Notes: generated by a model from the sequence alone, not told the origin. 64,000 nt of DNA from Macrostomum hystrix (GCA_950097015.1 CATNEN010000011.1:3410001-3474000); one strand, 5' to 3'; shown: positions 31,501-64,000, counted from the first letter of the stretch. Made by a program: numbers and translations.

Positions 31501-31930
31501 AATAGAGGAGAGAGAACAGAGGAGAGAGAACAGAGGAGAGAGAACAGAGGAGAGAGAACAGAGGAGAGAGGAGAGAGAACAGAGGAGAGAGGAGAGAGAA
31601 CAGAGGAGAGAGAACAGAGGAGAGAGGAGAGAGAACAGAGGAGAGAGAACAGAGGAGAGAGAATAGAGGAGAGAGAACAGAGGAGAGAGAACAGAGGAGA
31701 GAGAACAGAGGAGAGAGAACAGAGGAGAGAGAATAGAGGAGAGAGAACAGAGGAGAGAGAACAGAGGAGAGAGAACAGAGGAGAGAGAACAGAGGAGAGA
31801 GAACAGAGGAGAGAGGAGAGAGAACAGAGGAGAGAGGAGAGAGACAAGAGGAGAAAAAGACTGGAGAGAGGAAAGACAAGAGAGGAGAGAGAATAGATGA
31901 GAGAGGAGAGAGGAGAGAAGTGAGAGGTAG
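28540..31930. repeat. 3.3-kb 14-bp purine-rich minisatellite (gagagagaacagag, with 7-bp ggagaga sub-units)
   Basis: Direct units are visible. They explain the 1157-aa and 1179-aa low-complexity ORFs. Confidence 0.98.
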
Positions 31931-41202: not shown

Positions 41203-41302
41203 ATGCGCACCGCCACCACCTTGTGGCTGCCGCTGGCAGTATGCATCGCTCTAGCTGTGCTCATTGACGAGGGCACGGCCATGAGCACTTCCGTCACTGG
41301 GA
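41203..41302 (+). other. Signal-peptide exon of the giant gene
   Basis: MRTATTLWLPLAVCIALAVLIDEGTAMSTSVTG has a basic start, a hydrophobic core and a small-residue cleavage region. The donor is gtaagt. Confidence 0.8.
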
Positions 41303-44300
41303 GTAAGTGCTAACACTCACACCTGTGTGCTGCAATAACTCATTGTTTGTTCCTAGCTTAGTACATCTGTAACGCATTAACTATGTAATCCAAGTCTCTT
41401 AAAATGCATCAAGTCTGTGAAGCTTTACAGTCTTCTTCACAGTTGCTCTGTGGACATTTGATCGAGAGTTCGGTAGTTCGAATCTTGGAACCTTGAGAAA
41501 GACACTAAAATACCAAGCGCTTCTGATCGCTTGGTGGTGTTAAGTTTGTTAAATTTGGAGGCCTAATCATTCAATAGACTGAATAGCAGCGTAACAGAGC
41601 CTTTGAAAAGCTGCGGATGTGCCACTGGTTGTGTGACAGACATGCGTTCTCGTAGTTAGAGGCTAATGAAATGAAATATAAAATAAAATAATGAAAAAAA
41701 ATTTCATAGATGCTAAATAGTTATACTTATGCTTTTGTGAACAAGGCTATAGATAATTAAGCTACTTGTCGTGGTATCTTTACCATCGCAGCTCGGCACG
41801 GATGTCCGCCGGGCACCCGACAGACCTTCGACTCGAAGAAGTGGTGCCACTGCAAGCCGCCGCAGCCCGAGTTCTACGGCTCGCTGATCTTCGTCATTGA
41901 CACCACCGGCAGCATGCAGCCGGAGCTAGACGCCGTCAAGGAGAACATCAATCGGATCTTGAAAGCCAATACGCGCTTCAAGGACTACATTGTGGCCTTG
42001 TTCGGCGATCCTTACAGGCGCAAGCTGCTGCATTCGGCCAACAAGAACAAAATCTGGAACTTCATCCGGCCGGTGCGAGCTTCCGCCGGTGGCGACTGTC
42101 CAGAGTTTGCATTGTCCGGCGTCGAAGATGCTATCAAGGAGGCCCGCGGCAAGTCCGTGCTGTTCCTCTTCACCGACGCCTCCGCCAAGGATCGCGTCCA
42201 GAAAGAAGCGAAAGTGATTTCTCTGCTAAAAAAGAAACGGGTAGAGATCATCGTCATTGCCACCGGCAAGCTGTGCTACGGCAGCTACAAGAACGAGTAT
42301 CATCATCTGGTGGCAGTTAATGGCGGGCGCGTCGTTCACATGGTCAAGGATGAAATCCGAGATGTGAGTTGAATTTCAAATGCAACTTGTTTTTGTGTAC
42401 CAAGACCCAAAGGCACGACGTGTTGCTCATTGTTGCTGCGTGAGCTGATTGAAATGTTTTCCAGTTTAGTTTCTTTTTGGCACTCTAATTGCTTCTAATT
42501 CCCTAATCTCATGGGGCCTAGCCTAAGGCATAACTAGATTTGACACTACTTTTAATTCAGGTAATGGAATACGTCATCAAGGGTGTGAAGGGCGAGCGCA
42601 GCTTCAGAGGCTTCCCAAAGAATGCCGACAAACTGCGGGCCAGCTTGGAAGGAAGTAAGTTGAATTGACGAATTAGATAACAATGCGCTCAAACTGTGAG
42701 CAAGCAACTATAGATCCCAACTCTGCTTTTAAATTATCTTCAGCTTGCGAGTGCCGCATTACCAAAATCCAGAAGTGCAATCCGCTGCCAAAGCCACCAG
42801 CGCCACCGAAGCCATGTAAGTATGACAGCCGCTATAGGGAATAATAAGAATAATTGTAACATTTGCAGGGCCGTGGACACTGGCACATCATTTAATAAAA
42901 TTAGACCCGCAGCCAGCGAGGAGGCAATTCTGCCAATTCCGCTGACTCTTGAGCACGCACGCACAAACACACAGATTCTGTACGTAGGCAGACACTCCAA
43001 AAGGTGTGTACTCGTACATCTGCCCTGACTTTCTCATCGTCAGGCAGTGCACCCTCTTACTACGCCTTGAAGTTTGGCGCTCGGCTGCGCCCCAAATGAG
43101 TGCGGCCTCGCCGCGGAATCGAGCTCAGGGACCTTGGAGGCAAAATCAATAGACCGCTCTACCACTAACCAACCCCCCTATAGGTAGATAACAGGACACC
43201 TTCGTGGCGGCCTCAATTGTTCAGTGAGCAATTAACGTGCCGAATTAAATTTTCTCACGTATTTGTTGTTAAAACCATAGCTTGCCCACGAGGCTTCGAG
43301 AAGAAGGTCATCAAGGAGAAAACTTGCTCCTGCAAGCCGATAAGGCCGGACAACAGCTACGGCTCGCTGATCTTCGTGGTGGACATCACCAACAGCATGC
43401 AGACTGCGATTGACATTGTCAAGGACAACATCAAGCGCATCGTGAAGGCCAACAGGCGTTTCAGTAACTACGTCATCGCCACCTTCGGCGATCCCTACGT
43501 GCGCCAGGTGCTGAAGTCCACGGACAAGGCCAAGCTGTGGGACCACCTAGACAGTCTCTTTGCTAGGGGCGGTAAAGACTGTCCTGAGTTCTCTTTGTCC
43601 GGTGTTATTGACGGTGCTCTGGCCGGCGATAAGAACTCCGTGCTCTTCCTGTTCACCGACGCCTCGGCGAAGGATTACAGCACCAAGCTTAAGGAGGCCG
43701 AGAGGGTCCTGACGGAGCGACACACCCAGATCATCGCGATTGTCACTGGCGACCTGTGCCAGAAACAGCGTTATCCCTACCACAATGAGTACGAAATCCT
43801 GGCCAGAGCCACCAACGGCAAGGTTGCGCGGCTTAACAAGGAGGAGCTGCCTCAGGTCGGTCAACGAAACTTCCAACTTTCTTAAAAAAACTAGCTCATT
43901 GTGACTTGCAATCCGACTTTACCAAATCGGAAGGTTATCATGAAACGAGAATTTTAGTTATTGAACATTAACTTTAATTCTCGCTTCATATTACGATGTA
44001 GAGCAGCATTGAAGGATTTGTCAATGGTCGAAATAGGCGGCAAAGTTAAATACCACCCATTAATAAGAGATTATTACCAAAAATTAAGATTTCCATCGAT
44101 GAAAACTTGAAATTAGTTTTAGAATTATACCTTTACTTTGAACGCTTTACTACCACGCAAATTGAAACGGCACCTAAACTTGAGTTGCATCCAAAGGCTG
44201 CGTACAGCTGTTCAGTCTATGGAGAACCCAATTTTACAGCTCGTTTGACTAGAAAATGGGGGGTGTCAATTGTCTTGCTCAAATGCGCAAGCTGACTGGC

Positions 44301-47300
44301 TTAGAGTATAGTCAATGTTTTATGGAGTCCAGATAATAAGGATAACCGTTTAAGTCTCACGTCTGATGGACCACGCAACTTTTCGCACAGGGAAAGACCA
44401 CGGATGGTATTTCAAATACCCACTACCTACTTCCCAATAGCTCCTAAACCGAATGACCGATTTTCGTGAAATTCCACCTTATCAATCAAAGCTTTTCGCC
44501 CTCCGACGCCGTCCGACGTCAGCATCGTCGAGATATTCAGCGATATCTCGCCGAATCTCGCGATATCTAACTATTATTGCTCTGTATAAACCTCTGATGG
44601 CAAATCCTAAATTAGCAAAATAATCTGTACTATTTAAGCAAAAATAATAGCCGTCATTGTTGCGTGATGAAATTTTGCGAGCAGAAAAATGATGCCTATA
44701 TTAGTGGTTTTTGTCATCAGAGAACACGAAGAGAATCGTTGGATAGCTCGACGATGCCGTTGTTTTGTGATATTAGTATATCTCAAATACCCCCATGGTT
44801 TTTTACTGCTTAAGCGAGATATTTTCATCACTTTATACGCTCGTAGGTTATGGCGTTCGTGATGAAGGCCGTTGCCGGAGAAATCAGCTTCCAGGCCTTC
44901 CCAACCACCGCTGCATCCCTGAAGTCTGCCCTGAATGGCTGTAAGTAAAACTGGCTGTTGTCTACTCAAGTTTTCGCTAATCAGTCAATTTATGTCAGGT
45001 TTTATAAACAAATAAACTAACAAATACTTTGCAGCCTGCCAGTGCAGAGTGGAGATTTTCATTAACTGCGTTAAAACAAAGACTGGTGAGCTGCTCATAC
45101 AGTTTTTATACCTATTTCTGAGCCATTTTCAAGCTCTCAATGAATTCAACAGTTTATTTGATGGTCTGATGAAAATAAACTAAACTTCAGAGGTTAAGTG
45201 CCCGAAGGACTACACAAAGCGGGGCCGTTGCATTGAGGGTCGGCGGAAGGACACCCGCTACTCATTCCGCGTGGTCAAGGGTGTCTGCGTGAAGTCTGCC
45301 AAGAGCCAGATTCGATACAAAGGCTGCGAGCACACCAATTGCCCGAAGTCCAAGTTCTCTTGGTCGTCCTGCGTTGGTGGCTGGAAGTCTCGAACAGAAT
45401 ACGTCAACACCTACAATGAGGCCCAGCACAAGTGCGTGCGCAGCTCGCGCAAAGTTGGACGAGCCAGGTGCAAGATGCCATGTCGTGTGTTCGAGCGAGT
45501 CCTTAATAAAGGACCCTGCCACCGCTACAAGGGCAAGTTCTACAAGGTTGTCAAGTATGAGACCAACGTGCGCCACAATGTCTATCTGTGCAAGCGAGTT
45601 ACCAAGTCCAAGCGAGTTCGCTGCATTCGTGAGTTTTAATCTATTCCTGTGCCAAGTTCAGCGTAAATACTAAACAAACTAATTGTTGATACTTTCGGAC
45701 TCGCATCTCTTCCAGTGACGCCCTGCCCCAAGTCGCGCGTTAAGCGAGGCGTCTGCAAGGCGAAGAAGACCCGCGGACACAGGAAGAGCTCCGTGACCTT
45801 CAGCCACGAGACAGCTGTTTACACCCATGACACTCACTTGTATTACGTCCGCAACTCCAGAGGCCGGTGCATCCGCAGACAGCGAGTTCAGCGCCGTCTC
45901 TGTTCTACAAAGAGTAAGTTACTTCCGCGACTTTGTCGATGCTCGAATGTGTACCAATGAATTAGTACATTTCCGCCATTAACCATTGGCTACTCTTTGC
46001 AATTCGCCAGTGTGCCGCTGCTTCGCAATCGGCGATCCGCACTACAAGACCTTTGATCGTCTGCGCATTAACTTCTACGGCGGCTGCAAGTACGTGCTGT
46101 CAGAGACTGTCAGCAACAGCGGCGAGTGCGCTTTCCGCATCGCCGGCAAGAACTGGTACCGCGGACACAAGCTCAAGCACCGAGTGTCCTGGACAAAGTC
46201 CTTGGACATCACCATCGGTGGTCACACCTACACCCTGGGCCAGCAGCGGTTGCTGTTTGTGGATGGCCAGCCGACCCTGGTGCCGCACCGAATTCATGGC
46301 GGCCTCGGCTACATCTTCTACTCTGGACGCGCCATCGAGTTCGCCTCGGAGAAGTGCGGTGTCAATGTCTACTGGGACGGTAAGAGCTCCGCCGGTGTGC
46401 AAATCAACCGAGCCAAATACGGCGGCAGGGTGCGCGGTCTGTGCGGCAACTGCGACGGAGACGCCGGCAACGATCTGACGTGAGTTGGGCCGCATATTTA
46501 TCTACTCTGAGTAGCATGCATGGCTTTGTACAAACATTTACCATCCCGCATCCCATATTCAGCGATGCCTCTGGCGTGGTATACAAGGACCGCTCGTTCA
46601 GCAACATCCAGAAGTTCGCTCTGAGCTACCTGGTCGCCGAGAAAAGCAGCTCAGTTGAGGAGATCGAGCACTGCAAAGTCGCCGACGGACCGCCAGAGAT
46701 TTCGATCGAGATTGAGAAGAAGTACAGCGAAAAGGAATGGTGCGGCATCATTTCTAAGACCAGCGGACCCTTCAGCCAGTGCCTGTCGTCAGGCAAGATC
46801 AGCTTCGACTTCTACTTCCGCAGCTGCGTTATCGATCTGAGCTTGTTGGAAGAGCAGCAAACTCTTTTGAAACAGACCTTCTGCGAAATAATTAAGGCTG
46901 TTAACGAGGACTGCGCCGAGGTTGGCTTCGAGGGCATCGACTGGAGAAAGCACACCGACTGCAGTGAGTTTACTGATTTTTAGTTTGAGGACAAGGTTGG
47001 GACTATAGTAGGCACGCGACTGACATTGCGATGGTGGTTCAATCTACGAGGGCGATGGTTCTCTAATATATCTTCATAATAACCTAAGTAAACCTTATAT
47101 CGTTTTACTATAAAACTAATTTTAGCTCCGAAGTGTCCACCAAATTCGCGCTTCACCACGAAGATGAACCCGTGCCCGGCCACCTGCGAGTCATCAGTGT
47201 TCCGAACGAAGCGCCAGTGCTTCAAGCTGCCCAACCGCGAAGGCTGCGAGTGCAAGAACGGCTACGTGCTGGACGGACAGCGCTGCGTCAGGATGGGAGA

Positions 47301-50300
47301 ATGCTCCTGCTTGGGTGAGTTCCGACTCGGGCATTTGCGATGAAAGATAAAGCATCTCTGCTTTTAAATGTAGGATTATTGCTGTTAGTTTTCTGAACTC
47401 GGCAAATAAGGGAGTTCCGCGTTTCTCTATCGAATTAAGCTTGCAATGACGCCGCCACTGAGGGACAATGCGCCAGATGGAAGAGGCAGGGCCACTGCAG
47501 CAGCATGTTTGAGACATCCGGTATGCTCATGGCTTGTCGCAAAACCTGCGGCTTCTGTCACGAGAGTAAGTTTCTATTTTAGCGCTATCAGCATCGATAT
47601 TCAATTGATTACCAATATTCGATAGTCTAAAGTAAAAGCATTTTTTCCTAGAACCGATCTGCGAGGACTACATCGCTAGCTGCGTCTGCGCCAGAGCCAA
47701 GGCTACTGGCAACTGCAGCAAAAGCTTCTATAAGCACTTCTGCGGTCTCACCTGCAACTGGCGCAACTGTCCGTGCCGAGCTGCTAGGACCACCCGGGGC
47801 AAGTGCGAGGCCGATGGCACAAGAAAGGTGACCATGTTCCGCTACAACCGTAGCAGCGACAAGGAGTGCGTCCTTGACAAGGTTGAAAGACGCGAGTCCT
47901 GCCGAAGCTGCATCGGCAGCATCAAGCGAGTCTGGGGCAAGTGCAACTACTGCACTGGCAAGCGAGTCGGAAAGAAGATCGAGACTTACAAGTTAGTTTT
48001 AACGAATGGTGGCTTAGTTGTTAGGCATTCGACAAGGATATTTATACTACAACCTCCAACCAATTTGATCTCCAACGTGATTATTTCCAGGTCTGGTATC
48101 CGCTGCCTGAAGCGTGTGACTGCTATCTACATGTCCTGCAGTCTGTGCAAATTCCCTAGCGGCAAAACTCGCCATGTCACGGACCGATTCTGCAAGGGTG
48201 GCAACACCATTATCACCAGATTCAAGGTGAAGCGACAGACTGGCTGCTTCAAGTGCAAAACGGAGCCGTCATTTAGAAGCACAACTGTCCGCTGCCGAAA
48301 GCGTCCTCGAGTCTCCACAACGCCACTTCGTGGAACAAAGACTGAGAAGCTAAAGATGTGCATCTTCCACCTGCGCAGATGTCGCTGCCAAGAAAGATGC
48401 GTTACGATTGTCCAGCCAACAGAGTGCAAGCCGAAGATTTTGCTTAAAAAGCGATGCGTCATTCGCAAACGCGTGTCGGTGTGGAAGATCCTATGGCAGT
48501 ACGAGCGCCTAGTCAGGAAGAAGCTAAAGACCCGGTGCGAGAGATATAAGAGAACTCACACATCCGCTGTTGGTGAGTGTTCTTCTAATAGTAATAATAA
48601 TTATAGATTACACCTGCCCTGATTAGATCAGATGTGCAGCCGACAGCAAAGCCGCAGCTATTGCGCAGGGCATAAAGGCTAGGGGATAATGTACAGGGGA
48701 TGCATAATGGACAGGGAACGACAGGGGACGCGGGGACGCCACACCCCCCTCAAGTACCCCAACTAATGCTTGTACCTATTTAACAGCTGGGTGAACTGAA
48801 GCAAAGCAGAGCTAAGTGTCATGCTAAAGGACACAAGTTGTTCCAACTGAGTCCGGAATCGAATCCCCGATCTTCTAGTCGAGAATCAGACGCTCTAACC
48901 ACTAGGCGACAACACCTAGTAGGCTACTACCCTTTCTCTTCAACTCTTCTATGAGTGTTAATGTATTAGATTGTACGAGCTCGTAGCTCATGCAATCACT
49001 GCCTAAGTAGTTATTTCGGGAAGTAAAATATATACAGCAGTAAACTAAATAAGAAACGACAATAACTCGAATCTGAGCACCCCAATAAGTAATTAGTGTC
49101 CCTGAGCAAGACGCTTCCGCACTCCTCCTTGCTTTAGTTCGGCAAATTGTAAAATTGTTAGACCCAGTTGTGCTTTCTATTCATCTAACTTGAGTTTAAA
49201 CACAAGGACTTGCAAATTCTGCACAAAAAAAGATTCTGCTCATTTTAGTCTGCCCCAAGCGCCTGAAGTCCATCACTATTCGCGGCAAGCACTGCAGACT
49301 TTCAGCTAGAATCACATTCTACCACGTGAATTCCAAGTGCCAGTGCACCAAGGTTGTCAAGTACAAATCCAAGGGCTTCTACTGCTGCCCGAAGCCCAAA
49401 AGCAAGAAGGGACCATGCAACGTCGTGCGCGGCGTTAACGTTATGCGTACAGTTCAAACGACATTCTACAAGCTGGTGAAGGGAATGTGCATCAAGGAGA
49501 GCAGCGGCCGAAGGCTCCAAGTTTGCTCTTGCCGACCGAAGCGTTTCAAGCGCGCCTGCCAGTTTGGTCAGCTCAGCCAGCGAACCATGAAGTGCCGACT
49601 GCATAGAAGCCCGCGAGGCGCCTATTGTAAGTGCGTACAGGAGAAGACAATCATCCCTGTGACGTGCCGAACCACGTCCACCAGAAAACTGACTGGGTGC
49701 GTCATTAGGAGGGGTCTGAACCGTTACATGAGGATGCGATACTACTACTACACCAAGGAGAGATGCAAGTGCGTGAAGAGACACCGCGACCGACTGATGT
49801 GGTGCGGTAAGTGCACTGAGATTAGAAAAATGTACTTTTTAGTTAGACATACCCCAGAGTTCTCCATCTGCATTCGAACATCAATTTCTAATTTTAGGTT
49901 GCCAGGGAAAACCTATGTATGAGGTAAAACCGTGCCCGAAGAAGTGCAAAGATCCGACAAAGTGCAGCAACCGGTGCGTGAAGCAGCACATCCGGTACAT
50001 TGGCGTAATGAGACTCCGCAACAAGCGCAAGGTCTGCGTCCGAAAAATCGTGAGCCTTCAGGAGGAGCGCTGCTGCTGTTCTCCGGTTGTTCTCAACTTG
50101 AAGCCACGTAAAAAGTGCGTTTCGGGCAGCCTGCTCTTTAGGTATACCTACGTGAAGCGGCTTTGTCGAGGAAAGCGATCCAAGCTCGCCCAGTGCTGCA
50201 TCGTTCGTCGCGCTACCAGCAGGCGGGTTCCTTGCAAGCAGGGTGTGATCAAGACTGAAGCATCTAGATGCGGCAGAAACGGATATTTCACAATCAGCAA

Positions 50301-53300
50301 GACCATTGCCAAGCTGAGGAAATGTGTGTGCGAGAGGAAGGTGCGCCGAAGCCTGTGCCGCTGCAAGTGCCCGAAGACAACTAAGCGCGTTGTGTGCGAC
50401 TCTGGAAAGCGAATCTGGCGTGTGACAACCATCTCACACAAGATCGTCAACTGCAAATGCAGGAGAAATGTGGTCGTACGCGAATTCCCTCTCGATCCAT
50501 GCAAGAGAATCCCGCGGTCTCCCACAAAGGTTGGCAAATGCAACAAGAGGGGCATCAAGAAGCTGTACTACTTCTACTCCGTGAGAAGTGGATGCCGCTG
50601 CAAGCCGAGGTCTAAAGTTCGAATCTGTCACTGCAGTGAGTTTTGGTGGACATTATCCTCAATAAGCGACAATAATATTTATCAAATAACCCATTCAACC
50701 AGAATCAAACTAAAAAATATCGTTTATCACTTCAGGCTGCTCCGGAAAAGTTTCCTACACAAACTGGAGATGCAACGCCAAGTCAGGAGTGCGTCAGCGA
50801 GTGAAGTCATTCACAGTGAAGAACGGGTGCCAGTGCATTCCGAAGAAAAAGATCGAGAGGAAACCAACCAGTACGTGATTAATAATTAAATTGGCAATTT
50901 TGTTTATTTGATTTAAACGCAAACTGTAGAAAACTGTAATATTTCATAATTTCTTCCTAGGATGCCACCGAAGACGAAAGGTTGAAAGAATATGCCGCGG
51001 TGGCGTTCTACTCTTCTTCCTGCGAGAGTTCAAGCGACGAGGCTGCAAGTGCCAGTGGCGCATCAAAGACGTTGTTAGGAGACGCTGCGATCCACCAAGG
51101 CCACCCAAGGTTATCGTCAAGAAGGAGTGTCTCCACCACAAGATCCGCGTGGTCATTCGCACAAGCATCCGCTGGGTGAAGCGTACCATCAGACTCTTTG
51201 ATCGGTACTACACGTACGACGAAAAAGTCGTAACCAAGACCAAGAAGTCGCACCCCGTGACTTGTAAGAAGCACTTCTACTCTCCGGATGTGCGCGCGTG
51301 CAGGAATGGAAAGTATTTAAAAATCACCAGATACGACTACGTTCGCAATTGCGAGTGCAAGGTCGGGGCCAAGCGAGAGTTCAAGAAGTGCAGTTGCAGA
51401 AAGAGTACTAAGAGAGAGTCCTCTAAGTGTGACAAGAAGAAGTTTGCCATTGTGTCCACATGGAAATACAGGAAGTGGAGTTCCGCCCAGGAGCGCTGCA
51501 TTTGGGTTAGGAAGACTGTCATAAACCCAGTTCACTGCTCTTTCCAAAACAAAGTTGTCCGAGGTCGATGCCGCAATGGCAAGACTTACAAAATCACAAC
51601 AATGGTTCAGCTGCCAGACCGCAATAACTGCAAGTGTCTCAAGCTGAAGGAGTCAAGAAACGCTAACTGCTTCTGCAAGCCCATCAATCGTAGAAAGAAG
51701 TGCGACAAGGGCCGCTCTTGTGTGCGCTATACTTTGGTAACGCCAATGAAGTGGGACTATAAAAAGTCTCGATGTATTCCATTTGGAAAGACCATTAAGA
51801 AGCGCATCGTTTGCTGCTGCAGTAAGAAAGTGAAGAGGAAGACATACTGCGCCCCAGACGGCCATAGAAGGGTCACCAGAAGCTGGCAGGTTTACACATC
51901 GCGCCCTGTTCCGCGTTGCATTGAAAAGAGGCAAACTGACAAGTTGGTAATTAATTGCCAAGCTGCCAAGTACCAGAGACGACTACTAAGAAGAAAAGTT
52001 ACCAGAAGCTCGTGTGGCGCGAACAACTATCTGACAATCACCTACTTCCGTCTGCGACTAAACAAGAAGACTTGCCGGTGCGAGAAATATGCGCACAAGA
52101 AAAAGCGCTGCCGCTGCCGCTGCAGACGAGGTGAGAAGTTCGAGCGCAGTTACTGTCGCAAGGCGACTAACAAGCGCGTCAAGGTATATTCGCGAATGGT
52201 TCTGAAGAACTGCGGCTGCGTTAAGAAGCTGATCCATCGGGCCAGCGGCATCCGGTGCCGCCGAAAGCCCGTGGCGACACGCTGGAGTGGCTGCAACAAG
52301 AAGACCTGCCAGCAGTACCGCATCGATACGGTTGAGCGACCCAGAAATTGCAGATGCGAGCGCAAAAGTATTAGACGCCTGCATGTTACACGCCAATGCT
52401 GCTGCAATAAGAAGACAACATCCGACAGCGTATGCACTAGGATGGGCTGGAAAGTAACCACAGTATATTACAACTTCGATAGAAGAACTCGAAGATGCGC
52501 AAGGAAAAAGCGGGTGAACACCGTACAGGATGACGAGCTGATCAACTGCAAGAACAATCCACGCTTCACAAGAAAGAAGGCGGACAACTGTGCTCTGATT
52601 ATTTATCACAACAAATACTGGATCGACTTCCGCAAGTGCGAATGCAAACGGGTCTCTAAGCCTGTGAAGGCCGGAAACTGGTGCTGCTCCAAGGAGACTC
52701 GGGTTAGGCGCCATTGCAAAAATCGAATGTTCGTATTTGTAACAACTGTGCAGAAGCTCAAGGGAATGAAGTGCGTTGACAAGAAGACCTACAGAAAGAA
52801 GTCAGTTAGATGCCAGCCAGAACGAAATATTCTGGGCAAGTGCAACAGGGCCACTGGATGGGCCACTGACTACATCGGACAGGCCCGCGTGATGCTGAAC
52901 TGCTATTGCAAGAAGACCAGAGTGCCGAGGAAGAGACGTTGTGGTATGTATATCATAACTTCTAACAACCTCGCCATTATCAGTTTTTGTCACAATAGAA
53001 ACAAATATGCTATAACACCGTGGCACTATTTCAGCTTGCCCTAAGCCTCGATACGTGACCGACTGCCTGAAAAACGCCGGCATCGTCAGGAAAATCAAGG
53101 TATTTTACCTGCTATACGGTGGCCGGTGTGTCACTAAGCGCAAGGTTATCTCCGAGACCAAGGTGTGCTCTAAGAAGCCTGTTCTGCATCATTCGAGCAG
53201 CTGCAAGAGCAATAATTTCATCACAGACACTTACAAAGCTCAAAAGCGAGTAGGATGCCACTGCTCCACTCGTTACTTTAACAAACAGAGGCTTTGCCGT

Positions 53301-56300
53301 AAGTGAAACCATTTTCCACCCCCCTTAATTCTGTCAAAGAAATTTTGAAAGATGAATACTAGCATATTCACTTTGCTGAACCGATTTTAGGCTGCGACCC
53401 TCTTCGAAGCAAGAAGGTGATTTGCAAAGGCAGCTATATCAGAGTGCTGCACTACATGCACTACGTCAACAAGAAGTTTACTGCCTGCGATAGAAAGGTC
53501 ATCTCCAGGGTGAAGATCCCAATCAGTGAGTTCGCAATACTGTAATATATTTTGAGTTTCTTGAATTTTATTGCTGCAGTTTTAATCAATTGCACAAATT
53601 CCTAATTTAAAGGATGCCGCAGTGCCACACGCATTGGAAAATGCGAGCCATCCGGAATGAAGGGCCGCATGGTGCAGAAAGTCGAGAGGATCGTCAGACA
53701 CATCAAGAAGTGCAAGTGTGTCACAAAGCGAGTCATCGAGAGCACCAGGATCTGTAAGTGCCCAGACCCCTACAAGAAGAAGGGCTCCTGCAATCGCGAG
53801 TCCGAGAGGCGAAAGATTGTGCACTACAGTTTCACACTCAACTCTAAGCGAACCAAGTGTCGTCGTCATCAGCGCACGTCGCACGAGGTGTGCTACTGCA
53901 ACAAGAGAGCGCGCACCACCACCAAGTGTGACAGGCGCAGCGGTAACAACCTACTCATCTCTACCTGGCGACAGTTTGACGCGCGCAGAAAGCTTTGCGT
54001 ACGTAAGAGAAAAACTGATATCCAGGAGGTTATTTGCGAGGAGAGAACGACTCGAACCAAAACCGACTGCACTGCCAACGGTGTGCGCACTGACATCATC
54101 AAGAAGTACTACAAGGACTACAACAGCTGCTCCTGTCGCGAGTCTCCACGCCCAGTGAAGGTGCGATGCGCTTGTGTACCGAAGTGTCAGAAGAAAATCG
54201 TTCGCTGCGTTGGAGGCCAGCTGGTCACAAAGCGGAAGTGCTACAGACTCAAGGAAGTCAGTCCGTTTGTTAACGTTTGCGTCCCGTACTACTTTAAGAA
54301 AACGAAGAGCATAAGCAAGTATTTTTTGTCAATTTACATACTGTAGCGGTGCAACTATTGCGGCAAAGAACATAATTAAAACCGTTTAATCCTTTCAGAG
54401 TGTTCTCGAGCTGTGCATTATCAAAGATTCGCTGCTTGCAAAAAGTGCTCCAAGACATTCTACAAATGGGTGCACAAGAACATTGGCTGCAAGTGCAAGC
54501 GAGTAAAGAAGTTCTGGAAGAAGGTACGTTGCTGCTGCCCGAAGAGGCACTGCCGTACAACTTGTGAAGTGAAGGGCACAACGAAGGTCAGGCGCTGCAT
54601 TTGGTACAAGTTAATCAATGGCAGCTGCGTGAAGCATATCGACGTGAAGAAGGATCCGATTAAGTGTCTGAGGAGACAGGAGTATTGGTCCAAGTGCCGA
54701 AAGCAGAAGGCCAACGGTAGATGGTTCCGCTGCTCTGTTCTAAAGAGTGTAGTGAAGAGCGAAGTAAGAAATTGCGCTTGCCGCCCAGTCAGTACAAAGG
54801 TTTACCAGAGGTACTGCTGCTGTGGCCCTCGAACCATTCGAGAGAAATGCAACGCTAAGACGGGTGTGCTAACGAGAACAACCACCAGGAAGGTGCTTGT
54901 AGGAGAGGGCTTCTGCAAACCTGTACCGAAGACGAAGGTGATTCCTGCTCCAATTTGCCGCGGCTCCTTCAAGGGAGAAAATACCGGACGCTGTGACTTG
55001 AAGCGCAACCTGCAGAAATTCTTTGTTTGGACAGTCTACCGACACGGCTGCCATTGCAAAAAGCGCAGGAGTGTGGAGACTTCGGCTTGCGGCTGTCGTC
55101 GCAAGAAGCCGCTTGGACCATTCTGGACCAAGTGCGCTAAAGGTGTTCGAACCGTGTACTTTTACTACTTCGAGAGACAGAAAGTTGGTCGCTGGCGCTA
55201 CAAGTGCGTTAAGAAGAGAGTCAACCACCACATTGCCGATCAGTAAGTACACAGCAGTGCATTAAGGTATTGATAGACCAAAACATAAAGAAAATAAATG
55301 TAAATTTGATCAAACCAAATTTTCAGCTGCGGTAAATGTGGCAAGCCGGACAAAACAACCAGAGTGTGCAAGGGCGACTATTGGCTGCGCATCACTCTCG
55401 GCTGGAGAAAAATAACTCGCACAATCAAGATTCCGGGACGCTACCACGGAAGCATCAAGGTCAGCTATAGAGTGTGCGTGCGAAGAAAGAAGACCAAGGC
55501 CAGCAAGTCTATCTCCTGCGATTCGCCTCCGGAGCACAAAGCTAAGTGCAACAACTTCCGCAAGCGCATCTATCGCTACTACTACTCAGTAGACAAATGC
55601 GCGTGCAGGCTGAAGCGTAGCCTAGTAACTGTTCGCGCTTGCATGTGCCACAAAAAGAACTATTCCACCAAGTGGTGCAACGCACGAACCAACCAGCTAG
55701 TGAACAGCTACTACACATACGTAGCCAAGAACCGCATCTGTGAGAAGCGCAGACGCGATGTTTATCGAAAACTGTCCTGCCGCGTTGGCAAAGTGTTCCG
55801 TGATCGTACTGTTACGGACTGCAAAAATGGCCGACGTCAGGGATTGTCCAAGCTGAAGAAGGTGCGCTACTACATGTTCTACTATTCGCGCTGCAAATGC
55901 AAGAAGCGATACATCTATAGGTGGCTGTTGTGCGGCTGCGCCTCTAAGAGGGTAAGTACAATTACGTTAAACTAATTGAAATTTTTTACTGAGGACTCGA
56001 AGAGTAGGGCTAAGACAAAAGCTTTTGACCTTTGTTTTTAGAAACGAGAGGTTTGCAGAAATGGCAGGTGGTATTCCACTCTGTACTCTGTGACACCGAG
56101 GTACGACAGAAACGCGTGCGAGGTTACTAAGCGTTACGTGAACCGCGACGTGTCTTGTTCGAGGAACGCTCGCAAGAAGCTGCTGTCGCCATGCAATGCT
56201 TCCTGTATTAGAAAGTACGCCGTTTACTATCGACGCCTCGACAGACGAACCTGCAGGTGCAGACTTGCGCCACCAATCATTCTTAACCAGGTCTGCGGAT

Positions 56301-59300
56301 GCAACAAATGCCCGAAGGTTGGACGAACTAAGATTACAAAGCAGGTTGCCTGCTCTGTATCCGAGGGTATTAAGATCTTCACAACAATCAAGAAGGTTTT
56401 CGTGCACAACGGCAACTTGTTTAATCGATGGGACATCCTTGTGCCCAAGTACAAGTGCGTCCGAGAAGTTCAGCACAAGAAGCACAGAATCGTGTGCTCA
56501 AAGGGATCGGTTGTGACTAAAGAGAAGTGCGTCGGCGCTCTTCGCAAGCTGACGGTGAAGCGCCAAGTTCGAGTTGGATGTCGGTGCCGAGTCAAGTTCA
56601 CCACAGTGCCTGGTGGCCGATGCCGTAAGCTAATAAAATATTTACTTCGGAATCTGTCTTAACTGTTCTAAAGCTAAATAACTAGACACTTTATTTCTAT
56701 TCCAGAGTGCAAGGGAAAACACCCCAGACCACCGAAGATCTGGAAGTCCGACAACTGTTCCAAGGCGCCATACATGAGACGAGTGACAATCTACAGCTAC
56801 AAGCTAGACAAATCGGATCCAAGAAACTGGAAGTGCAAGGTTACTTCCAAGACCATTAAGCAGCGCTGCGGATGCCCACGCACTGTGAAAAACTCGGCTT
56901 ACTGCAACGGAAAAGGCAAAATCATCCACAAGAAGGCCTGGAAGGAGTTCCTGCCTCACCTTCGATCGTGCGTGTGGAAGAACGTCATTTCCAAGAAGGC
57001 CGCCACTTGCCCGGAGGCACAGCTGGCGCAAAACAATCTTCCGCCAAGAAGAACTGCCTGCAAATCATCCTCTAACTTTATGGTGACGTACGTGAAGAGA
57101 TGGTACGAGGTTGACCCCCGCGACTGTAATTGCAAGCTGAAGACAAAACGCTGGCGTTGCCCTTGTCGTAAGTAAAAATTTTCGGGATAGTTTCTATTTA
57201 AAAGCACAGTCGCATGAACCATATGACAATGTGCTATATTTGGAACTTTTCAGGATGCGCTCATAAGAATCGAATCGTCGAAAAGCGCTGCATTAACGGA
57301 CACATCATTGCATACACCGCAGTGAACTACGTAAAGAAGGGATGCAAGTGCCACAAGAAGAAGCAGGGAAGAATGAAGTACGTTACATGCAGACACAGAC
57401 GAGAAGACGACTACGATAGAATTGTAGTAGGCAAGTGCAAGAGGAAGGGACCTTCTAGAAATGCTGGCTACGTTAGGGTCGTGTACGAGAAGGAATACCC
57501 GAGACGATGCAAGTGCAAAGTCGATCGCCGAAAGCGTTGGGAGCCTTGCGACTGCTCTCTGATTCCGCAGTACAAGCCTAGGACCAGGCTAGTGTGCCAT
57601 AAGTCGGGCGGATTCTTCAACAGGGTGACCACTTATTATGTGGTTCAGATCGCCAAGAAGGAAGGTGCTTTCTGTGAGAAGCGTCGCCGAGTGGTGATTG
57701 TCCGTATCAATAAGTGCTTCGACAGGCGCGGCCGGCCTCTGCGGCGCACTGTGTCATCTGGTTTCGATAAGTGCAGCCGGAAGAAGACCGGATGCGCCTA
57801 TAGCCTACTCGTCCAGCAGTCGCACGTCAAAAAGTGCTCCTGCAAATGGAGAACTATTGCTGTTCTCGGCAAAAAGTGCTGCTGCGACCGACCATCCGTG
57901 CGGCACTCTTGCCTGCGCAATGACACCAAAGTAAAGGTAACAACTTACTATATCCTGGACGGATCCGGACACTGCATCAAGAAAAAGAAGAAGCAACAGC
58001 TCAGGCTGGTCAAGAAGAAGGCCTGCAAATACTCTAACGGCTTTCTTGCTCGCTGCCACGGTGGCAGAAAGCAGGCAATTTACAGGAAATACAACCCAGC
58101 CAAGTTCTACTTCAAGAACTGCGAATGCATTAAAGTCTATAGAGACATTCGCGTACCATGCCGCTGCGTGCCCAAGAGAACAGTTAAGAAGGTGCGCTGC
58201 GACGCTAAGCGAAAAAGGTGGGTGCACGAAGTTGTGATTCGATCACTTCGTGGCAAGAATGAGCGAACTCGCTGTGTGGCCAAATCGAAGTTTACCTACA
58301 CAAAGACCTGCGTCAAGAAGCCGCCACACGTCACGTTGGGCCGCTGCAACAAGTCAAAGGTCCGGCTAAGAACAACGCACTACGAGGTTAAGGTTAACTG
58401 CCTCTGCGTCAGAAAAAAGAAACTGCAAACCATACCTTGCACTTGCCCGAAGAAGAGCTGGTGGGTGTCGCTTGAGTCAAAATGCAGGCTGTTCAAGAAT
58501 GGGTTCAGTTACTATCCGAAGATTCTCATGGGTTACAAGTACGTCGAGAAAACCAACCGCTGTGTGAGTACTGAGTTGAAGCGAATGCACGTCATCTGTG
58601 GCTGTCCCAAGCCTAGAAAGTACAAGCAGTGCATTAGAAATGAATGGAGAATCACTGAAATTAGGTACCAAATCAACAGATCTGCAAATACCTGTCTGGA
58701 AAAGAGACGGCGTACTAGGAAGCCAATGACTGAATGCGCCACAAAGGTTAGAGAAGAATCAACCTCATACGTTGATACAAACACTGGCTACAAGACGATC
58801 ATCTACGATGTGGTGGAGAACCGCGGATGCAAATGTGTCAGGTACAAGGAGAAAGAGACAATTGAATGGCTATGCGAGGTGATCATGAAGTCTAAGATTG
58901 TTGAGAAACAGTCCTGCACAAGAGGAGTCATTATCCAGAGGCGAGCGGGAAATCCTTACTTCAATCAGCAAAATACTTGCACCGTGGACTACTCAGACAT
59001 CAGGATTGACGTTACTGGATACTGTCCGAATGCTGGAAAAGTGCGCCGAAAGGTGATCGGAGAATGCAGCTCTAAAACTGGTCGACAGAAGGTGCAGTAC
59101 TCCAGCTGGAAGCCGAACCTCAAAAAGTGCCAGTGCGAAAGAATTATTAAGATTGAGCATGAGATTTGTGACTGCGAGCCAATCCACAACCGCTACGTCA
59201 AGCGAGGTTGCCGAAACCACAAAACCAAGTTTGTGGACACGTACTTCTGGACCCTTGTCAACGGAGTCTGTGTCAGAGGCCGTCAGAGAGAGGAGAAAGA

Positions 59301-62300
59301 CGTCACTTGCCGAGTCGGCCGATTCAAGAAGGAGTCTCAGTGCAATCCTCTGAGCAGGAAGAAGGAAATTACTATAATTCAGCGTCGTCTAAGAAACTGC
59401 TCTTGTAAGGCTAGCGTGAAAAAGTACAAGTGCATGTGCAAGTGCAAAAAGAATGTGCTGTTAAGAATGTGTGACACCAAGTCTGGCTACACAATCATTA
59501 CCAAGATCCGATACGATCTGAAGCAGTGCGCATGCAAGAAGAGAACGACAACAATTAGGCTGAAGCCACCGCCTCCATGCGGCAAGAAGACTCTGAAGAA
59601 GAGCAACTGCCGCAGAAGCCTATCAAGCGGCAGCTCTGTGTCCGGCTATCAGAAGGTCACTGAGTGCAAGGCCAAGAGGCGAGGCTGCAGATGCCGACTC
59701 CACTGTCGCAGCCGAAAGAAGCTGTGCTGTACGTTCAATTCGGGAGCATTATCTAGTTGTGTGGTATATATTTAAACTTTGTAAATTTAATTTGACTTCG
59801 TTTTTTTCAGATTGCTCACCGGACGTCAAGGTCAAAAGAGTGTGCATCGGACACACGAAGGTCCGTGTCAGCACTTACAAGTACAGCGCCAACTATCGGC
59901 AAAATCGATGCGAATGGAAAAAAGTGATCTCGGTGGAGATCAACAAGGACTGCTACGCCATGGTAGACATTCCAGACACCAAGCAGTGCAACAAGAAGAA
60001 CGGCATCCTGATTATCAAGCACTGGCGTTACCAACCCATCAACTGCAAGTGCAAGAAGAGAGTCTACAAAGTCACTAGGGGTCGATGCAGTAAGTAGGCC
60101 GTTTTTATGGAATTCCCTTACCTGAAGCTATTTAGGTGATTGCAAAAATAATCTTTACTCGTAAACCTTTATGTTTCACGTGGAATCAAGTTTCGCATTT
60201 GTATGAAACCCTTACGACGATATTACAGAATGCAAGAGCGTCTGGCGCAAGGTTTCTGAGGGCCAGTGCGACACAACAGACTCGTGCACTAAGCCTGTAG
60301 TTTACGAGCGCGAGGTCCTGCACGGAATCCGATGCATTAAAAATAGGAAGACTGAGCACGTGACATGCTCGTGCGAGTGCAAGCCGAATATTCCTGCTTC
60401 GAGAAAGTGCGAACGATCGACTGGCACATGGGTCACATCTCACGTGACATGGAAGCTCCGCTGCAGCCAGACTACCAACTCCTGCAAATGCGAGCGAAGT
60501 GTGTCGAAGAAACGCCAGAAGCCGAAGTGCAACGGTAAGCAGGAGCTTCCCTACTGCAACAAGCGTACAAGGCGAGTCCGAGTTGAGTACAGAGAAGAGC
60601 GACTCAGCCGTTCGAAGTGCAGGTGCTACTGGACTGTTGTAAGGACCAAGCACGGCTTCTGTCACTGTCGCAGACCTGAAGTTAGGAGAAGGTGCGAGGC
60701 GCACAAGTATCGCATTAGGATCACTACTATCACTGAGACTTTAGATGAGAAGCATTGGACATGCATCAGGAGCCGCAAGTCCACTCACGAGCCAGTCAGG
60801 CCGTCGTGCAAGCCGAGCAAGTCTGTCAAGTACATTGGCTGCAACGCTTGGAAGGATAGACAAGAGTGGAAGATTGTGACTCTTCGCAGGCTGCATCCTA
60901 CATCATGCAGGTGCAAACCGGTTGTGCTCAAGTATCCGCAGGTTTGCATCTGTCAGGATTTGCCAGAGAGGCACCGCTATTCTGTTCATTGTCGACGCAA
61001 GGAGGGCAAGATTATCAGAATTCGTCGCAGCCGAGTTCTTCAACGAGGCAAGAACGGCAAGAAGGCGTGCAACATTGTGATTAAGACAACTGTGCAGCCA
61101 GTTAGCTGTGGTGACGGTACCTGGCACTACATTGGCAGCCCAGTATGTAAAATCCTAGCCAAGAACGGATGCAACAGCTACAGAAAGTACAAAAGGATTG
61201 TGCGCAAGGGCTGCACATGCCAGGCCGAGTACAAACGCAAACCGTGCAAGTGCTGTAAGTGGCGAGCCACGTTTTCTGCTTTATTGGCAATTGCGTAATA
61301 ACAAAAACTTTAGTTGCACTGTTCACTTTAATATTTCAGGCTGCCCCAAGGCAAGGAAGTTGCGAATCTGCAGTGTTGATGGACAGCGTTACTTGTTCAC
61401 AAAGTACATGTACGAGAAGCGTGGCTGCAAGTGCGTCAGAAGTACTAGACGCTGGTCTGTGCCAGTTGGTAAGCATCGAAGCAATACAAAAGTTTTTGAC
61501 GCATTAAAAAATAAAGTTGAAGCTATTTCTAATAATATTAAATCTAATTAACTGCTAACCTGCCAACAGAATGCTCACAATCGGTAAGCAAGCAGAAGAA
61601 GTGTCTATCTAACGGCCGCGAGAAAATTGTCACCACAGTGTACCGCCCAGTCAACTGTGGCTGCAAGAAGTTTAACCGAATTTCGTGGTGCAGGTGCAGT
61701 AAGTACCCTAATGAAAGTTGTTCTGCTCTTTTAGATTACAATATTTCATGTCTTCGAGCTAAAAAACTTAATAAACAAAATTTAAAACACTTAATAAAAT
61801 TTTTAGGATGCCCGAAGCCTGTTAGAGAGAGCCGCTGTGACGCTGAGAAACGCCAGAAGGTGACAACCTTTTTGCGATTCCGACTAAAGGGTTGCAAATG
61901 CCAGTTCAAGCAAGATATCAGGCGCCGCAAAGTCCGTAAGTTTCGGAAACTTTAACTAGCTCGTAATAGTCAGCAATGGCCGGCTTAGAACAAATAGATT
62001 ATTGGATACTATATTCGGATGGGATTTCAGACTGCAAGAAGACTGGTCGCAAGACGTACAAAAAGATTGGAAAGTGCAACATGACAACCAGGATGCAGCT
62101 GTACGAGTACGAGCAATCAGCATTCGATGAGGTCAACTGCAGCTGCTCGAAGAAGAAGATGAGAATCTACAAGCCGTGCAGTAAGGAATTAACTATTTTT
62201 AGCAGAACTTTGTTTAATATGATAAAAAATCTTATGATATTAATTTTTTTTCGAAATATTTACATTTTTCAGAGTGTAAGGGAAGCAGCAGAACTGTCCT

Positions 62301-64000
62301 AAGCCAGTGCAACAGGGCGTGCTTCAAGACTGTCAAATACACATGGTACCGCATTAGAGGAACCACTTGCCAGCGCAGGTCGAGAAATTTCAAGCAAGTT
62401 TGCTGCTGCCTTGGCAAACCCTACAGCATCAGGACTTGCGATCCAAAGAAGGGCGTGCAAATCACAGTCGACAAGTGGCAGAAGCTGGAGTACGATGAGA
62501 ACTACGAGCCCGAGTGCAGGGAGAAGGAGAAGGAGCGAAGAACCCCCGTTTTGGGTTGCGACACCAACAAGGTTACATTTAAGGACTCGAAATGCGTTGG
62601 CAGAAAGTACACCCGATCTTACTACATGAAGGTGATTGTACCAAAGAAGAACAAGAGAGGCACTGTTTGCCAGTGTGTAAAGAGAAGGGTTCGAAAAGAA
62701 ACTCGATACTGCAAGTGCCCGCGTACTCACATCAGCAAGACAAAGTGCAGAAGCGACAACGTTCTGGTGTCCACCAAGACCATGTACATTTTGGAGGACG
62801 GCCATTGTCATAGGTACAGAAGCCGAACAGAGAAGGTTCTGAAGTGTGCCAAGTCACTAAAGAGAAAGTTCAAGTGGAGCAGATGCGACCGACGCACTTG
62901 CAAGCAGAAGAAGTACGGAACTCTCTGCTCGTACAAAAACTGCAGAATCGACATTCGAGTTGATTATCGCAACCCGAAGGTGTACGAATGCTGTTGTCCG
63001 AGCTCCAAGGTTCAGATTAAGTTCCTTGAATGCCAAAACAAGCAACGCCGACGCGTGTTCAGAAAGTTCTGGCAGATTTTCTATCCAAAGCGCATGGTGT
63101 GCAAGTCGTTCGCCGAGAACATGTACAAACCGGTTCTCTGCGGTGGCTGGAAGGCGCGAAAGACTTTCTCTGGGGCTTGCCGCATCAAGGGTGCCGATAA
63201 GCACTTTTATCAGAGACTGCGCATCCGCTATAACGAGTACGAGGAGGGCTGCACATGCCGAGCGAAGACGCTGACTCCGCTGCGACTCTGCAAATGCCGA
63301 CGCAACCACACGGTGAAGGTGTGCAGGCGGGATGGTGTGCTGCAGTACAGGACAATGAGCTACCGACTGGTGGTTAAAAACGGCACGCGTCGCTGCAAGC
63401 CATACATTGCCAAGCACTGGGAGTATAAGCCTCCATGTGTGCCGGCTAGGCAAGCAAAGTGGAGTAAGCGTGTTAGTAAGTGTATCGATGGCATCAAGGT
63501 TATCACTGACTATCGCAGAGTGCGCGTCGGTTGCAAGTGCAAGAAGCAGGAGAAGGTCACTTCCGTTATCTGCGCCTGCTCTAAGACAGTCACGGAGAGG
63601 AAACGCTGCCGCCGTGGTCGATGGGAGATCACAAAATACGGAAAGAAACTGTCCTGCCGCAGCGAAAGATTCTGCTCATGCGTTCCATTCAAGAGAGTGA
63701 CGCACAAACTCCCAGCTTGTCCGAAGGGAGTAGTCAGGAAGGGCCCCTGCGTGCGCGGCTTCCAGAAGGTTGAGGCTAGGCTGTACGCCATCAAGGAATG
63801 CCACTGCACACCGCGGGAGTTCAAGAGGCATAGGCGCTGTCCGGATAAGTGCCCGAATCTGATCTCGACGCGAACATGCGTCAAGCTGATGAAGGAGGGT
63901 CTTTGTGAGCATCCGCAGCGCAAGGGCACTGTCGGCCAGATCTGCGCCCGCACTTGCGGAAAATGCTTCAAGTGCGAGTCGCCACATACGATCAAGTATC
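41203..64000 (+). CDS. Giant secreted Cys/Lys/Arg-rich multidomain protein (SP-vWA-vWA-VWD-C8-TIL-ShKT-TSP1-like repeats-ShKT), 3' incomplete
   Basis: 34 phase-consistent exons: 41203-41302, 41792-42363, 42561-42654, 42744-42815, 43281-43855, 44847-44940, 45035-45085, 45191-45628, 45716-45913, 46011-46479, 46563-46963, 47126-47314, 47440-47565, 47652-47991, 48091-48572, 49249-49806, 49898-50635, 50736-50870, 50961-52943, 53035-53298, 53391-53525, 53613-54314, 54399-55242, 55327-55951, 56042-56624, 56706-57167, 57254-59728, 59811-60089, 60229-61254, 61340-61468, 61570-61698, 61807-61935, 62031-62180, 62273-64000+. The total is 17,275 nt and the frame is still open at the window end. Confidence 0.9.
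41792..42654 (+). other. vWA domain 1 (hemicentin/vWA7 type)
   Basis: FVIDTTGSM (MIDAS DxT/SxS), GGDCPE and LFTDASAKD are present. Confidence 0.88.
42841..43175 (-). mobile_element. tRNA-derived SINE-like insertion in an intron
   Basis: The minus strand has an A-box-like TGGTTAGTGG, a B-box-like GAGCTCGATTCC, an unrelated body and an (ATT)n-like tail. No TSD was seen. Confidence 0.5.
43281..44940 (+). other. vWA domain 2 (paralogue of domain 1)
   Basis: FVVDITNSM, GGKDCPE and LFTDASAKD are present, with the same exon layout (575+94 nt vs 572+94 nt). Confidence 0.88.
46011..47314 (+). other. VWD-C8-TIL module (mucin/vWF D-assembly type)
   Basis: VWD: CFAIGDPHYKTFD...RVRGLCGNCDGD. C8: WCGII...GPFSQC...YFRSCVIDL...WRKHTDC. 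TIL: CPPNS...CPATC...EGCECKNGYVLDGQRCV...C. Confidence 0.92.
47440..47565 (+). other. ShKT domain (own phase 1-1 exon), followed by a degenerate ShKT-like unit at 47652-47770
   Basis: CNDAATEGQCARWKRQGHCSSMFETSGMLMACRKTCGFC has the canonical six-Cys spacing ending C-x3-C-x2-C. Confidence 0.88.
48586..48920 (-). mobile_element. tRNA-derived SINE-like insertion in an intron
   Basis: Features are an A box (TCGCCTAGTGG), a B box (GATTCGATTCC), a central GTGTCCTTTAGCATGACACTT...CACCCAGCTGT motif like conserved SINE core domains, and an (ATT)n tail. A related core fragment (gtgtccctgagcaagacgctt) is on the + strand near 49097. Confidence 0.65.
63850..63966 (+). other. ShKT domain near the window end
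   Basis: CPNLISTRTCVKLMKEGLCEHPQRKGTVGQICARTCGKC has six Cys ending C-x3-C-x2-C. It lies in the open frame missed by the ORF track. Confidence 0.8.

Follow-up and report, generated by a model that had tools for sequence, protein, structure and literature searches.

A giant, constrained gene for a secreted-type polycation in Macrostomum hystrix, built largely from a Cys-repeat unit found across flatworms

In the 64,000-nucleotide stretch of the Macrostomum hystrix genome analysed here (GCA_950097015.1, CATNEN010000011.1:3410001-3474000; called the window below, with positions counted from its first letter), the plus strand carries, from 41203 to 64000, a real, spliced and constrained gene for a secreted-type, disulfide-dense polycation. 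The orthologue of this gene in Macrostomum lignano is translated and has been recovered from worm surface deposits. The greater part of the protein is an array of an alternating double module, named A-B in what follows, which we treat as an undescribed Cys-repeat domain and as a candidate new domain family.

A spliced gene

The splice-aware model comprises 34 exons that encode 5,751 residues with zero stops, and thus matches the single 34-exon frame of more than 5,700 residues proposed in an initial annotation, which had been made from the DNA alone. At base 64000 the frame has not closed, so the gene extends beyond the window; 25 of the 33 introns are in phase 1. The model was built by a splice-aware dynamic programme and was then corrected with RNA joints, reading frame and paralogous exon structure: the initial automatic version had 41 exons, among which seven mini-exons proved spurious by these three kinds of evidence. 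Seven GT..AG joints, with exact match to the DNA, are found in contigs of four RNA-type runs (X9-X12), namely 44940>45035, 45085>45191, 45913>46011, 46963>47126, 47314>47440, 47991>48091 and 48572>49249. On the strength of these joints two mini-exons were removed and one acceptor was moved; a further two, although in frame, were discarded, since direct joining of exon 1 to exon 3 and of exon 5 to 43281 already keeps the frame (numbering of the automatic model). For the exon behind the second VWA domain, 44847-44940, the position was settled by reading frame together with its resemblance to the exon behind the first. That the VWA domains run on into the repeats is supported by the joints 44940>45035>45191, by the colinear orthologue and by the M. 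lignano proteomics entry, both described below.

Word sampling in other runs concerned a repeat exon and the exon of the second VWA domain (VWA2). In runs X2-X5, whose kind is not stated and whose size (39-47 Mb of contigs each) would suit transcriptomes, 96-100% of the sampled words of the two exons are present, the figure for the VWA2 exon being 100%; a sediment metatranscriptome contains 16-19% of the sampled words of both. As a separate observation, short stretches of intron 5 (991 nt), at 44189-44544, are ~90% identical to many RNA-run contigs that continue into unlike sequence, and this segment looks like a dispersed repeat or a transposon fragment.

Domains ahead of the array

The N-terminal part agrees largely with what had been read from the sequence. 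The N-terminus, MRTATTLWLPLAVCIALAVLI, is signal-peptide-like by sequence and is likewise kept in the orthologue from M. lignano. Pfam calls VWA_4 twice, and the VWD, C8 and TIL domains, which had been proposed as one assembly, are all called and keep that order (E-values in Table 1). Both VWA domains contain a DxTxS motif that appears MIDAS-like (resembling a metal-ion-dependent adhesion site), DTTGS in the first and DITNS in the second. The ShKT units fared less well: one, at 47442-47564, passes with 31.2 bits against a Pfam cut-off of 20.9, whereas two further candidates are below the threshold in Pfam, the one beside the first not being called and the one at the window end reaching only E=0.016.

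The VWD domain starts with CRCFAIGDPHY and thus includes the GDPH autocleavage-type motif, which is kept in the M. lignano orthologue and in several paralogues. Autocatalytic cleavage at GDPH is established in FCGBP and MUC2. The assembly of VWD, C8 and TIL (D assembly) shows ~30% identity to its counterparts in FCGBP, zonadhesin, hemocytin and mucins; FCGBP and zonadhesin come nearest, and for the M. lignano orthologue the identity to these two is 28-33%.

An alternating Cys-rich module

Taken as a whole, the in-window protein consists of 25.3% lysine and arginine (K+R), 8.8% Cys (504 residues), 6.7% D+E and 4.3% Tyr, with a net charge of +1,071, an isoelectric point (pI) of 10.1 and a mass of ~673 kDa. 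The repeat array accounts for 4,528 residues and 426 Cys. Its charge is evenly spread: it averages +9.9 per 46 residues, and all but 0.8% of 46-residue segments are positive. K/R runs are at most 5 residues long, Cys-free stretches at most 44, and S+T+P make up 15.8%. Because the charge is even, the K/R runs are short and S+T+P is at this level, the array is neither low-complexity nor mucin-like.

Two module types alternate: type A, C-x9-13-C-x16-21-CxC-x8-11-CxC, and type B, x8-10-C-x20-25-C-x12. Together they give a supermodule of ~93 residues, C-x11-C-x17-CxC-x10-CxC-x12-C-x25-C. In 13 in-register A-B copies the eight Cys are invariant or nearly so, while pairwise identity is merely 16-26%, in keeping with the initial description of the modules as non-identical. 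At i-E<0.01 (independent E-value) 40 supermodules are found, covering 3,557 residues; counted singly, the modules number 91 by regular expression or ~98 by length/46, with five more ahead of VWD, so that the early estimate of about 100 was sound. The composition given at that time for the module at 61807-61935 is exact (16 K/R, 4 Cys and 4 D/E in 43 residues). Exons 30-33, each holding one module between phase-1 introns, suggest that the array grew by exon duplication, with later loss of introns. When co-loss of Cys was followed across the family described below as a guide to disulfide pairing, Cys was found to be almost never lost, with a hint of a C49-C80 pair.

AlphaFold2 predicts the A-B unit to be all beta, with a mean pLDDT of 86.8 and a pTM of 0.53; module A alone, modelled from a 61-sequence family alignment, is likewise predicted as all beta (pLDDT 88.1), and the predicted module consists of one short strand and a long 12-residue beta-hairpin. 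The modest pTM of the double unit would allow for modules strung like beads instead of a rigid rod. No repeat exon has a Pfam match, neither TSP_1 nor Cys_knot being called, and comparison with solved structures gave no significant match (Foldseek against the PDB, E>0.3; VIA-align, Z 4.2 at most). Searching PDB sequences with the A-B profile returned zero relatives, and the ESM Atlas shape search returned nothing. ESM Atlas features gave weak leads only, TSP1 and PTN_MK, with a best score of 0.72 and a recognition of 878 (well below 2300). The cluster matches in AlphaFold DB are other proteins, some of them automatically named 'CTCK domain-containing' or 'VWFA domain-containing'.

Two known domains were considered for the unit and rejected. 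Both TSP1 and CTCK are, like it, elongated beta units of comparable small size held by disulfides, and UniProt has automatically named some family fragments 'CTCK domain-containing'. For TSP1, which the initial annotation had used as a label, neither Pfam nor the fold search gives support: there is no TSP_1 call, the TSP1 domain of CCN3 reaches just Z 3.4, and Foldseek with a single module returns no thrombospondin repeat (TSR). For CTCK and the cystine knot, hhalign against the CTCK domains of mucin and hemocytin gives a probability of 5.4%, and the structural matches to NGF have E>0.5.

Orthologue and constraint

The closest relative is M. lignano PAA86075.1 (BOX15_Mlig022224g1, UniProt A0A267GJ37), deposited as 'VWFA domain-containing protein'. 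From residue 1 onwards the two proteins are 77% identical across 4,038 residues, and in both the two VWA_4 domains are followed by modules and then by VWD. Its locus, NIVC01000294.1, is colinear with our model over residues 29-5,751: the ends of the high-scoring segment pairs lie at or near model exon boundaries, with ~75% of nucleotides identical in the exon blocks that align. The deposited protein ends at 4,112 residues, whereas the frame runs on colinearly for at least 1,700 residues (NIVC01000294.1 26244-32157); since the frame continues, and since footprint peptides map beyond its end, the public PAA86075.1 model is truncated. The combination of domains, which had not been recognised when first described, is uncharacterised but not unseen, orthologues and paralogues being public as hypothetical proteins. 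Searches by accession and by locus tag found no published discussion of Mlig022224/PAA86075.1.

Comparison of the two species shows that 98% of 438 aligned array Cys are conserved and that 91% of the K/R positions stay K/R. The dN/dS ratio (nonsynonymous to synonymous divergence, window model against M. lignano) is ~0.09 overall, with dS saturated near 1.7. We conclude from this ratio and from the conservation of Cys and K/R that the whole length is under purifying selection.

Beyond the end of the window the M. lignano locus shows what may follow. After the last ShKT there is a PAN_1 domain (1.3e-8; NIVC01000294.1:31222-32154). Past PAN, at 32228-34577 of the same contig, there are more Cys modules and a ShKT-like unit (by Cys pattern; Pfam makes no call), followed by an acidic tail that is long and rich in Ser (SSSGSSSEESS...). 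This acidic-tail region is either the end of the orthologous gene or a neighbouring gene; a poly-Ser polyanion, possibly phosphorylated, beside a polycation would be notable.

A flatworm family of A-B proteins

An exhaustive HMMER search of 1.84 billion proteins with the A-B profile retrieved 56 at E<=1e-3, of which 9 have E<=1e-30, the best match reaching 8e-83 with 46 matched stretches, and every named match belongs to Platyhelminthes. They include several loci of M. lignano, cestodes (Echinococcus granulosus, Sparganum, Dibothriocephalus), trematodes (Echinostoma, Paragonimus, Dicrocoelium, Clonorchis) and monogeneans (Cichlidogyrus, Protopolystoma). A Schistosoma relative with published cell-type data was sought as well, and only Clonorchis turned up. 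A word-based homology search with an 853-residue exon found no match; it considers only proteins of 0.55-1.75x the query length and therefore provides no evidence of novelty.

Throughout the family Cys is at ~9%, and in 509 supermodule instances the eight Cys are near-invariant. Charge, however, varies: parasite members have 15-17% K+R and ~10% D+E, against 21-29% K+R in Macrostomum members. The extreme charge looks like an elaboration of the Macrostomum lineage. Two parasite relatives illustrate the difference. E. granulosus EUB62272.1 (5,275 aa, 'Collagen alpha-3(VI) chain') and Clonorchis sinensis CSKR_202890 have 20-46 copies of the same eight-Cys supermodule plus VWA. Unlike the M. hystrix protein they are mildly basic (K+R ~15%, D+E ~11%), their VWA is of the classical type and stands at another place in the protein, and the parts scanned contain no VWD. 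The 'collagen' name of EUB62272.1 appears to rest on VWA alone.

Recovery from footprints

Footprints of M. lignano were analysed by proteomics by Wunderer et al. (2019, PMC6410801, Dataset S2, sheets footprints_Trypsin_intact_1 and _2). The orthologue is listed there as a complete transcript of 15,710 nt, coding for 5,237 aa (611 kDa, pI 10.18), with 58 peptides and a score of 215, and is described by automatic tags only (VWA, zonadhesin, IgGFc-binding protein); the text of that paper treats Mlig-ap1 and Mlig-ap2 only (PMC6410801). We compared 56 of the 58 listed peptides: 53/56 have an exact match in the translation of the M. lignano locus and 43/56 in PAA86075.1. The mapped peptides begin in the first VWA domain and extend as far as distal repeats that lie past the end of the deposited model, and one of them, WSVPVECSQSVR, crosses the M. 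lignano junction homologous to that between exons 30 and 31 in the window. A paralogue, Mlig026472, is the second-ranked footprint entry (score 312, 6,570 aa, pI 9.70). Two members of the A-B family rank second and fifth by footprint score, above fibrillin.

The same sheet also contains vitellogenin-like proteins (411, 231) and fibrillin (185) (PMC6410801), because of which the sample cannot be taken as pure glue. In Datasets S1 and S3 (lectin pull-down and tail) there are other entries named 'hemicentin-like VWA', of pI 10.5-11.75 and 432-1,242 aa, whose peptides, e.g. NYINAIKPSGGGDCPEYSLSAIR, match none of the proteins compared; more members of the A-B family may therefore exist.

Likeness to known secreted and adhesive proteins

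FCGBP and MUC2 share with the M. hystrix protein the GDPH at the start of VWD, besides the D assembly itself. There are also differences: FCGBP, zonadhesin, hemocytin and the gel-forming mucins have many D assemblies, compared with one here; the PTS region (Pro, Thr, Ser-rich) of the gel-forming mucins is absent, and CTCK is not detectable in the protein as far as the window end, the true C-terminus being beyond it; and most of the present protein is an unrelated cationic repeat.

The flatworm adhesion proteins Mlig-ap1, Mile-ap3 and Tmed-ap3 are likewise giant, secreted, extremely K/R-rich and found in footprints, and the published model for such proteins is charge-based cohesion (PMC6410801, PMC9229212). 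Their charge, however, is in low-complexity K/R sequence (GRK, KSRKVN-type) with pI >13, while here it is on folded Cys modules. Mlig-ap1 consists of low-complexity K/R regions, a C-type lectin domain, 17 EGF modules and VWD-C8-TIL (PMC6410801). Only the last domains are shared, two VWA domains being present instead of a lectin/EGF array; neither C-type lectin nor EGF is above the Pfam cut-off in the M. hystrix protein. The resemblance to Mlig-ap1/ap2 that had been noted initially is therefore confined to VWD-C8-TIL and positive charge, and does not extend to low-complexity K/R, C-type lectin or EGF.

Possible role

What we consider probable, though well short of assured, is a general scaffold of surface secretions: a secreted polycation that is deposited with these secretions and is cross-linked through its FCGBP-like, GDPH-bearing VWD assembly. 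Glue or mucus material deposited on a surface fits because the orthologue is among the top-scoring footprint proteins. The earlier interpretation as an adhesive, egg-cement or mucus protein is supported in part: the protein is of a secreted type, polycationic and disulfide-dense, has a polymerising-type VWD-C8-TIL assembly and two VWA domains, and its orthologue stands high in the footprint list (PMC6410801). The similarity to TSP1 and any closer resemblance to Mlig-ap1/ap2 fall away. In mechanistic terms, the protein would be stored in gland vesicles and discharged onto the body surface or the substrate, where the cationic array could bind polyanions by multivalent charge. Candidate polyanions would be the glycocalyx, a biofilm-coated substrate, or sulfated glycans from the mucus or rhabdites of the worm itself; sulfated glycosaminoglycans have been reported in planarian rhabdites (PMC5450325), and attachment of M. 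lignano is blocked by heparin and other polyanions (PMC6410801). By analogy with FCGBP and MUC2, the D assembly might bring about disulfide multimerisation, to which GDPH cleavage may add covalent cross-links, the two leading to a cohesive gel or film, and VWA, ShKT and PAN may serve as extra binding sites for proteins or glycans.

Several points weigh against this scaffold. Vitellogenin-like proteins and fibrillin are in the footprint samples too, and presence there does not prove active secretion. The footprint proteomics text contains no peptide around the GDPH site, and cleavage was not observed. Cardin-Weintraub heparin motifs are not enriched in the array over shuffled sequence. Since the parasite relatives are mildly basic (K+R 15-17%), a charge-based mechanism may apply to the Macrostomum lineage only. 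Finally, a contig with the VWA2 exon is present in none of the four runs X9-X12, and the M. lignano proteomics entry, at 5,237 aa, is shorter than the 5,751-residue window model, a gap for which repeat collapse in transcriptome assembly and alternative splicing are possible reasons.

Among the other explanations, one would make the protein a dedicated temporary adhesive of the duo-gland organs, held in adhesive-gland vesicles as a cohesive polycation like Mlig-ap1/ap3 and neutralised by a secreted polyanion at release. Orthologue and paralogue are indeed both in the footprint proteome, the logic of a polycation joined to VWD-C8-TIL parallels Mlig-ap1, and attachment of M. lignano is stopped by heparin and other polyanions. 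We nevertheless hold this to be unlikely: the published account of the adhesive gland names Mlig-ap1 and Mlig-ap2 as two adhesion proteins, footprint samples contain more than glue, and the A-B family occurs also in cestodes, trematodes and monogeneans. These three groups are not known to have duo-gland organs. From the extension of the family to endoparasitic flatworms we argue that duo-gland adhesion is not its ancestral role.

That same distribution, across all flatworm classes and including endoparasites, would suit an internal protein of the extracellular matrix or basement membrane, a flatworm analogue of the hemicentin- or fibrillin-type scaffolds that reaches footprints as debris. Fibrillin is in the same footprint sample, and the names given to relatives in the data tables of Wunderer et al. 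point to a hemicentin-like VWA. Members of the A-B family, however, are second and fifth by footprint score, ahead of fibrillin; so extreme a positive charge is unusual for matrix scaffolds, and secreted mucus-type proteins are where ShKT, PAN and a D assembly of the FCGBP type are more typically met. We give this possibility little weight.

A third possibility is a reproductive secretion (eggshell, egg cement or seminal fluid) left on the substrate with the eggs. Egg-derived material seems to be present in the sample, since vitellogenin-like proteins top the footprint sheet, and shelled eggs, which all flatworm classes are known to lay, would fit the wide distribution of the family. At 4.3% Tyr, however, the protein is not Tyr/Gly-rich in the manner of known flatworm eggshell precursors, and we consider this origin quite improbable. 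Least credible is a defence molecule, in the form of a polycationic antimicrobial or anti-predator coat with toxin-like ShKT units, for which the high cationic charge and the ShK domains could be invoked but against which the size and the repeat scaffold suggest a material rather than a diffusible effector, and just one ShK domain is firm.

Features of the gene and the rest of the window

Table 1. Parts of the polycation gene within the window and the basis on which each was placed
Feature	Coordinates	Strand	Basis
Exon 1: start codon, signal-peptide-like N-terminus MRTATTLWLPLAVCIALAVLIDEG	41203..41302	+	Sequence, model; conserved in M. lignano orthologue
Exon 2: VWA_4 domain 1, MIDAS-like DTTGS	41792..42363	+	Pfam PF25106, 1e-27
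Exons 3-4: ~55-residue tail after VWA 1, with CxC/Pro-rich linker at end	42561..42815	+	Model; tail paralogous to that after VWA 2
Exon 5: VWA_4 domain 2, MIDAS-like DITNS	43281..43855	+	Pfam, 2.9e-34
Exons 6-7: tail after VWA 2, leading to first module exon	44847..45085	+	RNA joints 44940>45035, 45085>45191; acceptor 44847 by frame/paralogy
Exons 8-9: ~five K/R/Cys modules ahead of VWD	45191..45913	+	Joint 45913>46011
Exon 10: VWD, GDPH at 46031-46042 (residue 739)	46011..46479	+	Pfam VWD, 3.2e-23
Exon 11: C8	46563..46963	+	Pfam, 5.2e-11; joint 46963>47126
Exon 12: TIL	47126..47314	+	Pfam, 8.9e-9; joint 47314>47440
Exon 13: ShK/ShKT	47440..47565	+	Pfam PF01549, 3.3e-7
Exons 14-34: six-Cys ShKT-like unit (no Pfam call), then ~95 alternating A/B modules (~47 supermodules)	47652..63828	+	Joints 47991>48091, 48572>49249; AlphaFold models; ~+10 charge/module
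Exons 30-33: one module per exon, phase-1 introns; 129, 129, 129, 150 nt	61340..62180	+	
C-terminal ShKT-like unit, cut by window end	63829..64000	+	ShK E=0.016, below Pfam cut-off

Upstream of the gene, 26 kb (13535-39789) are packed with minisatellite arrays, the largest of which repeat a 14-bp unit (AGAGGAGAGAGAAC) 242 times at 28550-31918, a 30-bp unit 117 times at 18117-21613 and a 24-bp unit 64 times at 36091-37633. These arrays account for the extreme GC/AT skews and for the long 'ORFs' (open reading frames) of this region. On the minus strand, an uninterrupted ORF of 1,352 residues at 9177-13232 contains protease, reverse transcriptase, RNase H and integrase in this order, which is typical of the pol of a Ty3/gypsy-type long terminal repeat (LTR) retrotransposon, and at 24494-25258 there is an endonuclease-reverse-transcriptase domain (Exo_endo_phos_2), consistent with a long interspersed nuclear element (LINE). 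On the plus strand, an ORF at 6232-7053 with a RabGAP-TBC domain (2e-12) is probably an exon of an ordinary neighbouring gene.

Meaning of the finding

The kind of protein is known already, as a giant secreted VWD-type mosaic and as a polycationic flatworm secretion, and uncharacterised orthologues are public. For the repeat domain, for the A-B family and for the presence of the family in footprints we found no published description. A bolder proposal, which we put forward tentatively and would not call probable, is that proteins with the A-B supermodule make up a class of structural proteins of the extracellular space that is present throughout flatworms, has gone unrecognised and is based on a small disulfide fold of a new type. 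In free-living Macrostomum this class would have become super-charged and would serve as a major, overlooked third component of footprint or mucus material beside ap1/ap2, while milder relatives in tapeworms, flukes and monogeneans would build surface or attachment matrix.

The current model of temporary adhesion in flatworms rests on two or three proteins, and a family of even larger polycations, among the best-detected proteins of the published M. lignano footprint data, has been overlooked. If the A-B proteins aid cohesion, mucus structure or surface binding, then the charge-based model of attachment and release needs another player. A folded, disulfide-stapled bead with a charge of ~+10 per 5 kDa is a design unlike that of the low-complexity K/R glues and may be of interest for biomimetic adhesives. 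The A-B unit is also present in medical and veterinary parasites (Echinococcus, Clonorchis, Paragonimus and flukes of the Fasciola group), where it goes under misleading labels such as 'collagen alpha-3(VI)'.

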